A DNA stretch of 64,000 bases from assembly GCA_964035545.1 (NCBI GenBank), contig OZ037770.1, positions 8,004,973 through 8,068,972 on the forward strand. Direction: 5' to 3'. This stretch comes from Bugula neritina (taxonomy: Eukaryota; Animalia; Bryozoa). The position numbers were made by a program, and so were the translations under genes. Under the pieces are notes generated by a model. It searched no databases. It worked only from the letters and a program-made list of their open reading frames with translations, and had not been told where the DNA came from. The first letter of the stretch is position 1, and every line of letters begins with the position of its first letter. Shown here piece by piece: positions 15,119 to 29,191 of the stretch.

Positions 15119-18100
15119 CTACACTTTATCAGAATGTTGGTTGTTCTCATCATTTTCATACAGGTGAGTAGAGGTTCCCTCTCCCTGTCCGTCTTTGGCA
15201 GAGGTCAAGGTGATTTCATCTGGACCTTCGTACTCAAAGGCTTGGTCCATGGTTCTGAACTCACCAACTACTGGTTGCTTGTCCACAGGAAGTGACTGCT
15301 TGAGGTCTAAGGGAGGGTCAGCACGGAAAGGCTGCTCGTACTCGGCTAGCAAGTCCACAAGATCTGGTCCCATGTACTCCGCAGGCAAACTCGTTGGTCC
15401 TCCATCCAGAGAGTTGGAGTCCATAAGCTGGTCATCATACTCAGGTTCATTCTCTGGTGCCGGTGAGCTGTTAGCAGTGAGCCTTTCATGCTGGTGTTGA
15501 GGAGTGGAACCATGTGGTTTCTCATAAACCAAAGAAGGAATGATGTCAGGTATCTCTTCATACAAGTGATCAGCTACAGTGGAAAACCCATTATCCATCA
15601 CTTCCTTTACACAGTCATGGATGTATCTGTACTGCTCCTGTATTTGTTAATTACAACAAACCAAGTTACACATAGTATAGTGACTGCTAAAAACTAGAAT
15701 TTTACATTTTATGTAACATTTATCATGTAATAATCATAAGTTAGAGATCATAGGGAATCTGAAAGTTCCCTTGGTGAGTGCTGCATATATGATATTGATA
15801 AGATTACTTAAACTGAATTGAAAAAGCTAACGTTTGGCAGCAGATTATCATATCTTGCAGCTATAAAAAAGATTTTGAAGATGAAGTTCAAAATCTAAAA
15901 ATAGAAAAATATAAACAATCAATTCTCTTTACATAATAACAAGTTTCAAGAAATATCTCAAGATTTGAGAAAGTTTCAACAAAAGCTCATACATTCTAAA
16001 TTGATTTAAACTCATTAAATGGTCAAAATATAACTTGGTTTATTTTTTTCAGGAAGATTACCATGAATATACAAACAAACACATGATGAGTTTTTGTCTT
16101 GAGAGCTACTCTTAACGGTCATGTTTGAGTCATTTTAACTAGCGGTAGATCTTCTCAACACGATATTCAAACGTGTCTCGATTTTCACTTATAAAACTAT
16201 AGTCCAGTTGTGTGTTGATGATAAACCATATATCTCACCTCTGTCTGAACCATTCTACACCTGTACTCTCTCATCTCCATCACGACGTTGAATATGTTTA
16301 TCTCATCATGATCTTGAATACGTTGAAGAAGTCTATCAACAGCTATGTACAAGCCAGTACGACCAACACCAGCACTGTCAAACATTGTATACACCAGATC
16401 AATAGAGAACTGTCTAGAAGCATTTAAACATCTGCAGTGTAAAAGTATAACAGATAAAGTGTTACCTGCAGTGTAAAAGTGTAACAGATAATGTTACCTG
16501 CAGTGTAAAAGTGTAACAGATAATGTTACCTGCAGTGTATAAGTATAACAGATAAAATGTTACCTGCAGTGTATAAGTATAACAGATAATGTTACCTGCA
16601 GTATAAAAGTATAACAGATAATGTTACCTGCAGTGTACAAGTACAGCAGATAAAGTGTTACCTGCAGTGTACGAGGAGAGGGGAAGAACTTCCATCTAAC
16701 ATTTGACTTCTCACTGCCATCACAAACTCTAGCAAAGCCTGTGGTTGTGATGGACATTCAAAGCTGGGCCAGAATGTTGAAGAAATGTGTTTGATAGTCC
16801 GTATTGTTTCACCCTGGGAGTACAAAAACTGCAGACATCACGTCACATAAGGACCAATAAACTTGTTCCATCATTTATATGTAGCTTCACAGCATTTGAT
16901 AATAAGTGCTAGCCAGCAACTTATAGCACTGGATTTTAGCTCGATAAACATGCTCGATTCTATATTATACATATAGACCAAACACCGTTGCGTTTGGGTT
17001 ATAGCTTAAAATAATACTACCTATGTTATGATGTATATAAACATATCTTTATAAAAACTGCAAAAGTCAAATGCAGATAATATGTATGTCAGAGTAAGAG
17101 AACTTACCATTTGAATATCAAATATTCTGATGGTATATTTTGGAAGAACATATTCAGCTCTCTTAGTTACAACTAAGTCACCATATGCTGCAGGTTCCTC
17201 TACTGTGTCTGGCCAGTACTGTTCACACTGCTTTCTTCCTGAAACATAAACAATTGTTAGCAATTTACCTCTCGCTATAAGTTAACATACTTACATCTCT
17301 CCATAATTCAATATACTTACCTCTCTCTATAAGTTAATATACTTACCTCTCTCTATAAGTTAATATACTTACCTCTCTCTATAAGTTAGCATGCTTACCC
17401 TCTCTCTATAAGTTAATATACTTACCTCTCTCTATAAGTTAACATACTTACCTCTCTCTATAAGGTAATATACTTACCTCTCTCTATAAGTTAACATACT
17501 TACCTCTCTCTATAAGTTGAGTCAACATCACTATCATAGTAACATTCTGTTCCCAAATCATTCTCCAGAAATGGTCAATAGTTCCTGGTAGGGGTCCCTG
17601 AGCAGCAATGTATGTTTCTGTTGAGGCTTTACTCTATCATAAATATAAATAACTGCAGATTCTCAATATTCTGGGATTAGGATTAAGGGGCCTGTGTATA
17701 AAGTGCACAATTGAATAAGTAGAATAATAAAAACTTTTATACCTGTATGATGTACAGATAATTACTAATTACGTAAGTATTATAATTCTATGTTAACAAC
17801 TTAATTAAGAATTATTTGAAATTCAGAATTACATGCAAGGCTATTAAACATGCAAAAATCAGAGGAAACTCATAATTTCTCACAGGAATGAAGTTAGCAT
17901 TGATGTAGTCTCCCTCTCCCTTATTAGATGTTAGTTTTACTCTGGAGTGATCAACTAGAAACATTAGCAAATGCAGTGAGTAACTACTACTAGTGGTGGT
18001 ACACTTATAATTCCTGCTATATAGAAATTATCATGTAACATTAACATGCAAATTTGTGGTATATAAATTGTACTGGGGCTTATCTTTGATATTTTCATGT

Positions 18101-27100: not shown

Positions 27101-29191
27101 TTGTGTTACGTCATCAATGGGTAGATTAGAGATGGCAGCTGTTCTCTTAAGAGACACCTGAGGCATCACAGCTATCAGCAGTTGTGAGGGATTTGTTAAA
27201 TCTATCTGCATACAAAGTATAATGCGGCAAATTTTAGAACAAAGTTTACAGTCTTTGAAAAAAAAGTATAAAGAAGCAATTACAATGGCTACCTCCAACG
27301 ATATCTTATATGGTGTATAAGTATACAGTATACTACTAGAATGGCTGGTTGTGTGGAATATTGAAAGTAAATATTTGGTGCTTGCTATAGAGTTGCCTTG
27401 CCAATACATAATGTGAATAGGTTATGTCAATTCTTTTCAATCATTTGTAAATATACATAAATACATAAGTTTATTGTCTTACGATGTTACTGAAACTATG
27501 TACAAAATTTGACTTGTGCTACTGCAATTAGATACAAGTATTGATTTGAGTAACCAAGACGAGTTACAATTATTTACTTGAGGTACTTCATATTAACTGC
27601 TCAAACTCAACTTAGATTTTGATAAAAAAGAGCTAAAATAACAATCTGGTCATACAAAATTAAAAAGTAATTATTAATGCTAACATCATGCATTATACTC
27701 TATCACTCAAATTCACTCTCTGAAATCAAATTTCATATTCATTGCAAAAAATTTACTCTTGCAAACTTGAGTTATAAATTGCATAAGCTATATGTAGCCC
27801 ATAAGATACCTGCATGCCACCTGCTTCCATGAAGTAGGAGGTATCTTGAGGTAGATTAGAGTAGAAAGTAGCTGTGACAGAGCTTACAACTCCATCTTCC
27901 AAATTTACCTCCACATTGTGACAGACACTGCAAGAGATTAATGAAATACTGAGTTCACACCAGTACCATTACACAGAGGAACTTACTATTGAGGTGTAAA
28001 TAAACTGCTTATAGTGCATATTGTGTGACAGTAGAGGTAAAGTAAATCTAAGTAAGAAGCTTATAGGTTGTGCTGTAGAAATTGTTGCATTACCATATTA
28101 CTCGCTATTTATGTCCGTCAGTGCTGATTAGTAAAGGCTATATAGTCTTAGTTGGTAAGGAAACTCTTTAATGTCTCACTCTTTTATAAGCCAGAGAATA
28201 CAGTTACTAAAATATTGCATCACTCGCATGTCATATAATGATTGTATGCGCAAATACAATCATTATATGACATGAGAGTGATGCAATATTTTAGTAACTG
28301 TATTCTCTGGCTTATAAGAGAGTGAGACATTAAAGAGTTTCCTTACCAACTAAAACTATAATATAGCCTTTACTAATCAGCACTGACGGACATAAATAGC
28401 AAGTAATATGGTAATGCAACATGCACTTCCTTACAATGGCTACACGTAGTTGGTCAAGTGAAACACAAACATCAACACTTGCAGAAAAATTTAAAGAGTT
28501 TCGCATCAACGTTAGGGTCATATAAGTATGCTTATAGAGCATCTATCAATTTACATTTTAGGCTAGCACAAGTGCTAAAAAGACGTCAGATGTATAAACA
28601 CAGGAGTTAAAATAATCTAGAGAAAGTAACAAACAAAGAGCGGAGAGATTTATTGTTTTCATTTAGTTACTCGAGTAAGTTTGATATTAAAAAACCACAA
28701 TATGCAAAGTAAAAGTGGTATTGGAATAGTGTGTAGCAAAAGACTCTTCAAAACATTTAAACAGAGCTGTCATAGTTTCCAATCTTGTATACCTTTGACC
28801 AACAGTTAAATTAAAGAGTGTCTGCTGGCACTATCCAAAGTTCACTAGGTGCTATTCTCTTACAGCTGAGTAGTATTGGCCTATATGGTAGTCAGTACAC
28901 AATACTTTAACAAACTTCGCTATGATTAAAAAATAAGCCTTGGCTTTTCACAAAAACTTTGAGATTTTACAAAATTTTGTGTGCTAGGCTCTTGTTTATG
29001 AAGGTTCATTTCATTTATGTCCAACATATTATAGATGTCTCAGAAGAAACATTGAAAAAGGTCTATTGTGGATGCATGAAGAATGTTGAATATAATACTA
29101 ACATAATACCAACAGTGTATTACAGTACTTACCTAACTAAACTCAGCAAAACTGTAACAACTTTTAGATAGTGGCAGTAAAACTGACTCAT
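15119..29191 (-). CDS. RPTP-A: receptor-type PTP-like protein with signal peptide, NHL/beta-propeller-like ectodomain, 2 FN3, TM, one atypical PTP domain and Tyr-rich tail (~1236 aa)
   Basis: 22 GT-AG exons, phases consistent, 3711 nt: 29191-29133, 27927-27810, 27205-27091, 26647-26089, 25607-25480, 25264-25097, 24249-24092, 23610-23487, 23178-22994, 22898-22745, 22465-22280, 21867-21732, 20607-20503, 20388-20218 (TM), 19588-19474, 19258-19168, 17954-17884, 17633-17504, 17238-17108, 16813-16662, 16374-16239, 15637-15119. Motifs: [50 protein letters not shown]. The first six exons are less certain than the rest. Confidence 0.85.
16420..16670 (-). repeat. 32-34-bp tandem repeat of the exon-end/donor junction (..TACACTGCAG|GTAAC) in the intron splitting HC|SAG of RPTP-A
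   Basis: Six extra copies plus one degenerate copy of the junction. Confidence 0.9.
17265..17520 (-). repeat. 26-bp tandem repeat of the exon-end/donor junction (AACTTATAGAGAGAG|GTAAGTATATT) in RPTP-A
   Basis: About 9 extra copies directly following the real donor. Confidence 0.9.
18413..18832. mobile_element. 420-bp foldback MITE with AAAT target-site duplication
   Basis: Nearly whole-length inverted repeat GGGTCATTTTACTT...AAGTAAAATGACCC with AAAT on both sides. The paralogous RPTP-B intron (~34430) has the empty site ACAGT-AAAT-ACTAG. Confidence 0.9.
20630..20960. repeat. 18-bp minisatellite (CAGTAACTCACTAACTAY)n; shorter paralogous array at 36200-36330
   Basis: Directly visible tandem units. 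Confidence 0.9.
24411..24571 (-). pseudogene. Relic half-exon of an RPTP-B FN3 exon at the duplication breakpoint
   Basis: Matches 40732-40896 ([15 protein letters not shown]). The 5' half of the exon is missing and the donor is damaged by a 4-bp deletion (GTATGTTCAC to GTTCAC). Confidence 0.8.
28083..28421. repeat. ~340-bp near-perfect palindrome (foldback) in RPTP-A intron 1
   Basis: Arms of ~165 bp are reverse complements around a tiny loop near 28252; no TSD seen. Confidence 0.9.

Follow-up and report, generated by a model that had tools for sequence, protein, structure and literature searches.

A candidate receptor phosphatase with a propeller ectodomain in the bryozoan Bugula neritina

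The classification of receptor tyrosine phosphatases rests on the ectodomain, and few of these receptors have a known ligand. To our knowledge, the receptor biology of Bryozoa is almost undescribed. We analyzed a 64,000-nucleotide stretch of the genome of Bugula neritina (OZ037770.1, positions 8004973-8068972, referred to here as the window), which belongs to the contig named C6 in assembly G000. The window carries a gene, copy A (29191-15122, minus strand), that we incline to regard as a lineage-specific fusion of a propeller head with an R3-type phosphatase. Its predicted product would consist, in order, of a signal peptide, a six-bladed NHL-like propeller of ~360 amino acids, about three FN3 domains, a transmembrane (TM) helix, a single PTP domain with WPS in place of WPD, and a tail with a YxN motif.

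Copy A, its paralogue copy B and all other genes discussed lie on the minus strand of the window. Positions are those of the window unless a contig is named, and genome searches covered the 216,009,554-base assembly.

The two halves of copy A and their junction

The first half of copy A is a set of six head exons between 29191 and 25097. All have AG acceptors and GT donors, and their end phases (2, 0, 1, 2, 1, 1) chain without a stop into a joined frame of 382 codons plus one base. An initial annotation of this DNA had proposed six exons, including a signal peptide, that are unrelated to the downstream module. Every peptide string it quoted is present in the window, and the exons can be placed exactly (a slash marks an exon border):

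29133..29191, minus strand: head exon 1; begins with the ATG at 29191 and a hydrophobic stretch that resembles a signal peptide; ends in phase 2 at donor AG/GTAAGT; the copy at locus F (see below) is 90% identical and has the same donor
27810..27927, minus strand: head exon 2; phase 2 to 0; the motif N-L-x5-Y-x3-G-x4-D-L, which runs on into exon 2b, matches Watersipora protein P0002
27091..27205, minus strand: head exon 2b; phase 0 to 1; tblastn match to residues 49-87 of P0003; 10 genome copies; dN/dS (ratio of nonsynonymous to synonymous change) 0.04-0.12
26089..26647, minus strand: head exon 3, the large exon; 186 amino acids, about three propeller blades; 10 genome copies at 87-100%; dN/dS 0.2-0.3
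25480..25607, minus strand: head exon 4; phase 2 to 1
25097..25264, minus strand: head exon 5; last propeller blade and a C6-specific five-codon extension; donor A/GTAAGT in phase 1; tblastn match to P0003 residues 325-374

The second half of copy A is a duplicate. The region 14523-24571 is collinear with 30481-40896 at 74-93% identity, introns included (blastn), and is a diverged tandem copy of it. Homology ends at 24571 in copy A and at 40896 in copy B, and the latter position is inside an FN3 exon of copy B (41013-40804). This blastn boundary agrees with the abrupt end of homology at ~24571 in the initial annotation. Its description of the duplication as exon for exon comes close, but does not hold in the strict sense. 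Copy A lacks the part corresponding to 39677-40728 of copy B (two exons, one FN3 domain), a missing stretch that is bordered by a 16-bp minisatellite, and it carries a truncated remnant of an FN3 exon (24571-24408). Only the 3' part of that exon is left, and its original donor is shortened by 4 nt. If the remnant were used as a cassette (acceptor CCTAG/, donor A/GT), the reading frame would be preserved.

Donor 25097 (A/GTAAGT) and acceptor 24249 (TTACAG/) are both in phase 1 by nucleotide inspection, so the in-phase splice proposed earlier is available, and the acceptor sequence of copy B at the homologous position is identical. A search between 25100 and 24240 produced no convincing ATG-initiated signal-peptide exon. 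Thus, apart from the head exons, nothing visible could supply the FN3-TM-PTP part of copy A with a signal peptide. The region around the junction comprises the following elements:

24572..25096, minus strand: junction intron; its sequence is found only at the three C6 loci that have a head; without AATAAA or ATTAAA
24408..24571, minus strand: truncated FN3-exon remnant, homologous to copy B 40728-40896; the fusion breakpoint is at its upstream edge
24281..24412: 16-bp minisatellite, with staggered self-matches, bordering the 1.05 kb missing from copy A relative to copy B
24092..24249, minus strand: first retained FN3 exon; acceptor TTACAG/ in phase 1, donor GAT/GTGAGT in phase 0; 11 copies on C6

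The exons downstream of the junction have the layout of an R3 phosphatase:

20217..23660, minus strand: remaining FN3 exons and the TM exon (~20217-20381); about three FN3 domains in all, read from open frames
16200..19345, minus strand: single PTP domain in several exons, collinear on one Y_phosphatase profile
15122..15646, minus strand: C-terminal exon with tyrosine motifs YEEI and YENDEN (YxN) and a stop
30481..50068, minus strand: copy B, the FN3-TM-PTP paralogue; its ectodomain is long and FN3-only, its N-terminal exon is Thr-rich, and head exons are absent

Five catalytic exons of copy A align in order with one Y_phosphatase profile (positions 11-230 of 234), which indicates a single PTP domain, and the terminal exon comes next. 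The P-loop, VHC/SAGVGRTG (HCX5R, Cys-X5-Arg), is intact, although an intron containing a 32-34-bp minisatellite divides it. An apparent ten-residue dead site with a Cys-to-Asp change is ruled out, because this intron lies between VHC and SAGVGRTG. Both copies have WPS where the general-acid loop of a classical active PTP has WPD, and KNRT where its phosphotyrosine loop has KNRY (WPD-loop exons 16661-16837 and 32416-32625; also 19097-19345). Members of this family may have low activity or act as substrate traps.

A C-terminal YxN phosphorylation motif and phase-1 FN3 exons are typical of R3 phosphatases, whose ectodomain is defined as FN3-only (PMC5336234). Copy B conforms, with an FN3-only ectodomain, an Fn3_Dep-1_3rd Pfam match and a Thr-rich first exon. 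Copy A has the YxN motif (YEND) in its last exon (15646-15122). If spliced as modeled, it would have 382 N-terminal residues that form a propeller half and about three FN3 domains left. Copy A is therefore predicted to retain the other R3 features and to depart from the FN3-only ectodomain.

The ectodomain of copy B includes an internal tandem duplication of several FN3 exons (43435-45400 versus 47360-49400). Intron minisatellites with periods of ~32-34, 26 and 18 bp are present in both genes in different copy numbers, at 16432-16671 and 32183-32427, at 17263-17520 and 32969-33568, and at 20633-20918 and 36194-36330.

The head and its stand-alone relatives

The head exons were searched one by one. 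Pfam produced nothing meaningful for them, and the NHL repeat (PF01436) has no match at E <= 1 for any head exon. The same NHL profile also has no match in the Watersipora homologues P0002 and P0003 or in P0016. An exhaustive phmmer search with head exon 3 against a library of 1.84 billion representatives gave 19 matches. These include a near-identical metagenome fragment of 187 amino acids, four Watersipora proteins (P0002 with E 5e-16), as well as one from the Logan assembly of a public sequencing run. Further matches are weak and in multiple stretches (E 6e-6 to 1e-3); most of those checked are long NHL-repeat proteins. By language-model features, too, exon 3 falls among NHL clusters.

The full-length Watersipora homologue P0003 served as a proxy for folding. 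An AF2 model of its residues 20-400 was built from an 11-row family alignment that includes exon 3 of copy A. The alignment is shallow because a homologue search with P0003 gave only itself and P0004. The model (pTM 0.75, mean pLDDT 66) has 22 strands in six groups, which is the arrangement of a six-bladed propeller, and Foldseek matches it to propellers only. In VIA-align, the top ranks are NHL-type six-bladed propellers, namely SOQ1 (Z 21.0) and NHLRC2 (Z 20.5), with the Z values of 20-21 extending over 265-278 residues. The Bacteroides proteins BT_3476 and BACOVA_00264 come next, then PknD and teneurin, and the YWTD propellers of LRP6 and LDLR score Z 18-19. The earlier prediction that ~360 residues of head are propeller-like is thus borne out by the homologue model, and by that model the head is a six-bladed NHL-like beta-propeller that the Pfam NHL profile does not detect.

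The likeness to known NHL propellers is one of fold. The lumenal domain of SOQ1, NHLRC2, the PknD sensor and the teneurin NHL domain superimpose with Z 18.7-21 over 240-278 residues at a root-mean-square deviation of 3.2-4.6 A, and there are weak sequence matches. However, sequence identity is ~13%, the Pfam NHL model misses the head, and YWTD propellers have nearly equal scores.

The full-length relatives P0002 (574 amino acids), P0003 (450) and P0021 (477) have in common a signal peptide and an ectodomain of ~370 amino acids. In P0002 and P0003, a TM helix and a tail follow the ectodomain; P0021 has instead a Thr/Pro-rich stretch and a hydrophobic C-terminal end. The homology of the head exons to P0002 and P0003 spans the entire ectodomain; by tblastn, residues 49-87, 108-261 and 325-374 of P0003 map in order to exons 2b, 3 and 5. 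Two Watersipora subatra proteins, XP_067939979 and XP_067938698, and a cluster of genes on a second Bugula contig (C9) resemble the ectodomain of copy A exon for exon, with a signal peptide and an exon 5 that ends in phase 1. Identity to copy A is 30-40% for Watersipora, and exon 3 is ~90% identical to the C9 copies. A donor family of the kind that the initial annotation suggested looking for is therefore present, and the head, unrelated to the FN3-TM-PTP module, has a gene family of its own with stand-alone members.

Exon 3 has ten copies in the genome: the one in copy A, two more on C6 (8122797, locus D; 8197296, locus F) and seven on C9 (591-660 kb). The remaining head exons are distributed alike. 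At least seven stand-alone copies are on C9, and their terminal TM exon was located for four. In these genes, exon 5 stops right after ...ITW with a phase-1 GTAAGT donor, and ~2.2 kb downstream a phase-1 terminal exon encodes a TM helix, K-K-R and a stop. Protein and DNA searches of the genome found four copies of this TM exon on C9 and none on C6, and no convincing copy of it exists between 25097 and 24249. In the stand-alone proteins, the C terminus is a TM helix with a short tail (seven residues after the TM helix in C9 copy 615), whereas the C6 copies lack the TM exon and the C9-type donor and precede FN3-TM-PTP exons. The head family is one of bryozoan-restricted type I membrane proteins, composed of a signal peptide, propeller, TM helix and short tail. 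Because Watersipora is the outgroup, the TM-anchored stand-alone form is taken as the older state.

Two features of the C9 copies deserve mention in their own right. One stand-alone copy (C9 622124-622237) has lost the stop after the TM exon and has an extended tail with tyrosines (..TDYYSLKYF..), which is a possible tail variant. In addition, exon 3 of copy A (26089-26647) differs from the C9 copies by dS of 0.12-0.20 versus 0.5-0.9 for exons 2b, 4 and 5, and the similarity stops at the exon borders. Copy A is nearer to C9 than to D in this exon, as gene conversion between A and C9 might produce. A tree, however, shows that D simply sits on a long branch, so conversion is not supported. Exon-limited homogenization or synonymous constraint may account for the low dS.

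Phosphatase-family genes, about ten in number, are arrayed in tandem on C6 at 8.02-8.43 Mb, where the first retained FN3 exon is present 11 times and the catalytic exon nine times. Each of the three head copies on this contig (A, D and F) is followed downstream, on its own strand, by FN3 exons of the phosphatase family. None of the three keeps the C9-type donor of exon 5, and each has five extra codons (WSCISQ in A and F, WCSILQ in D), a stretch 2 nt longer than the C9 sequence. This difference in length sets a second donor, GTAAGT or GTAGGT, in phase 1, which is the phase of the FN3 exons. The re-phased donor, a predicted splice site, is a shared derived character of A, F and D that the C9 copies do not have. 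Copies A and D also have in common a 320-bp flank after exon 5 (24915-24595; 81-91%) that occurs nowhere else in the genome. Locus D has no truncated remnant exon, so that only this head-side flank, and not the 24571 breakpoint, is demonstrably common.

Locus F is 98.3% identical to copy A over 24878-28263 and ~91% beyond. The next 5 kb contain a truncated FN3 exon and a retrotransposon fragment of the gag-protease region, and B-like FN3, TM and PTP exons come after them. At locus D, the FN3 exon has a TGA, the head is interrupted by a 7.5-kb insertion, extra FN3 fragments are present, and head exons 1-2 were not found; this locus looks degenerate. As separate observations on locus F, the 3.4-kb tract that it shares with copy A (C6 8196088-8199474 in F) includes introns and is likely due to recent gene conversion or partial re-duplication. 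The element beside the truncated FN3 exon (C6 8192500-8194000, plus strand) is a gag-protease fragment of a long-terminal-repeat retrotransposon with the D-T-G aspartic protease motif.

These relations suggest how a fusion could have arisen. In the ancestral stand-alone form, exon 5 would have been spliced in phase 1 to the small terminal TM exon. Exons 1-5, duplicated but not accompanied by the TM exon, would then have landed in the array of R3-type phosphatases on C6 and broken an FN3 exon at 24571. The original donor of exon 5 would have been lost, and a second GTAAGT five codons downstream re-phased to phase 1 by the 2-nt change. Because the second donor is in phase 1, it is able to splice to phase-1 FN3 exons. 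The fused unit would subsequently have been copied within the array to give loci A, D and F, of which A would be the cleanest survivor.

One transcript, two or none

We infer that the halves of copy A are joined in a single mRNA. A less probable though serious alternative is that the locus consists of two units: a secreted propeller gene without a TM helix, made by reading through the exon-5 donor to a TAG at 25062, and a 5'-truncated FN3-TM-PTP pseudogene or relic without a signal peptide. In A, F and D alike, the read-through frame is indeed open as far as this TAG. The N-terminal exons that copy A itself once had were removed by the break at 24571, and D and F illustrate that such loci decay. 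However, A and D disagree at about half of the residues in the 13 read-through codons, as intron sequence would, and there is no poly(A) signal ahead of the FN3 exon (neither AATAAA nor ATTAAA between 25100 and 24240). Copy A has no other signal-peptide exon, and the consensus phase-1 donor is kept in all three C6 copies. Moreover, the ~10 FN3-PTP coding segments of copy A that were checked are open, without a stop or frameshift. Their dN/dS versus copy B is 0.44 at a dS of 0.14, a comparison that includes a few intron-derived codons; open segments with such values are hard to square with a gene that has been dead for that long.

It is rather unlikely that the whole locus is a nonfunctional by-product of rearrangement in the array, unexpressed or removed by nonsense-mediated decay, with frames that are intact only because it is young. 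The array is certainly dynamic, with minisatellites, transposable-element insertions, the 98% A/F tract and partial duplicates in D, and the WPS and KNRT changes suggest relaxed catalytic constraint. Yet A and D are 10-20% diverged and have a junction flank in common, so the fusion is not very young. The head exons are under purifying selection: between the fused copies, nonsynonymous change is 2-9 times rarer than synonymous change (dN/dS 0.11-0.55 for A versus D), and dN/dS is 0.04-0.30 for A versus the C9 copies.

We consider it highly improbable that the juxtaposition is an assembly artifact, a collapse or mis-join in a region rich in near-identical paralogues, since a contig of run X1 (short-read DNA contigs, possibly from the same sample as the assembly and so perhaps not independent) covers 24542-24814 with 0 differences and depth in that run tracks copy number. 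Only 30 letters of this contig lie on the near side of 24571, and the rule for bridging asks for one more. Depth is ~55 on the sequence unique to A (24636-25187), rises to 150-200 in stretches that A and F have in common and reaches 700-900 on multicopy exons, and the F-type alternative is represented separately by a loose end at 24888.

Several points weigh against the fusion gene that we favor. The evidence for it comes from DNA, X1 included. Most FN3 exons are in phase 1, and chance by itself gives a phase-1 match about once in three. Splicing could be disturbed by the truncated remnant exon. Locus D is degenerate, and at locus F the head is separated from the FN3 array by retrotransposon fragments and a truncated FN3 exon. 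Finally, the A-versus-B dN/dS of 0.44 reflects only moderate constraint, the first FN3 exon alone is near 1, and all dN/dS figures are pairwise, so that constraint is not assignable to the lineage of copy A itself.

Comparison with known receptors, and other features of the window

No protein with both the head and a phosphatase is present among the 1.84 billion representatives, and the literature searched, a collection of 8.4 million papers, yielded no propeller-headed or NHL-headed receptor phosphatase. The statement in the initial annotation that no such receptor is known therefore agrees with both searches. Like the R3 phosphatases (PTPRB/J/H/O/Q, Ptp10D and DEP-1), copy A has membrane-proximal FN3 domains with phase-1 exons, one TM helix, one PTP domain and a YxN tail. 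In contrast to them, the N-terminal half of its predicted ectodomain is a six-bladed propeller, and the species has a tandem array of ~10 genes. The variants of the WPD motif given in PMC5336234 are WPE, WPQ, WSV, WPI, WVD and WTD, and do not include the WPS of copy A.

There are parallels in organization outside the R3 type. Receptor phosphatases of the R2B (MAM-Ig) and R5 (carbonic-anhydrase-like) types have an N-terminal ligand-binding head, FN3 spacers, a TM helix and PTP domains. Copy A would follow the same principle of head and spacer. However, its head has a different fold, the R2B and R5 receptors have tandem PTP domains, and those receptors are ancient and conserved, whereas copy A would be the product of recent, lineage-specific exon shuffling.

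By analogy with its domain families, the propeller of copy A might bind an extracellular ligand and thereby control a phosphatase of low activity, or one that traps substrates, together with a phosphotyrosine tail that docks SH2 domains. The initial annotation had envisaged paired receptors with a common signaling half and two heads. This idea is partly supported, since the signaling module would indeed have two types of head, but "pair" does not describe an array of ~10 genes and a head that also occurs on a bare TM helix. Because at least seven C9 copies carry the head on such an anchor, an arrangement of one head with two outputs fits at least as well as one output with two heads.

A more speculative possibility, which we regard as doubtful, is a two-way modular system. 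The propeller would be displayed either on a bare TM helix (at least seven copies, C9) or on a phosphatase (two to three copies, C6), and the phosphatase would also be used with FN3-only heads. Such proteins could be matched decoy or adhesion receptors and signaling receptors for one class of ligand, for example in self/non-self or symbiont recognition, with exon 3 kept alike between the contigs.

If the fusion is real, a phosphatase whose propeller head comes from an independent family of membrane proteins would add a class to the known ectodomains. Its origin would, in addition, be a case of receptor invention by exon shuffling that can be dated, in which the donor family is extant, the breakpoint is within an exon, the splice donor was re-phased by 2 nt and the resulting unit was copied. 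Because the head also exists without a phosphatase, the two forms would amount to a natural experiment in which one recognition domain is connected to different outputs.

The remainder of the window is rich in repeats. The gene pair lies between two copies of a LINE-like element that encodes reverse transcriptase (3410-5340 and 62084-63927, both minus strand). A GC-skewed 30-bp tandem repeat is present at ~10.4-10.7 kb (10400-10700). Long trinucleotide microsatellites, which read as poly-Thr, poly-Leu or poly-Ser depending on frame and are followed by ~85 near-identical residues, occur at 11826-12599 and 53194-54019. This second pair suggests a duplicated segment that carries the microsatellite.

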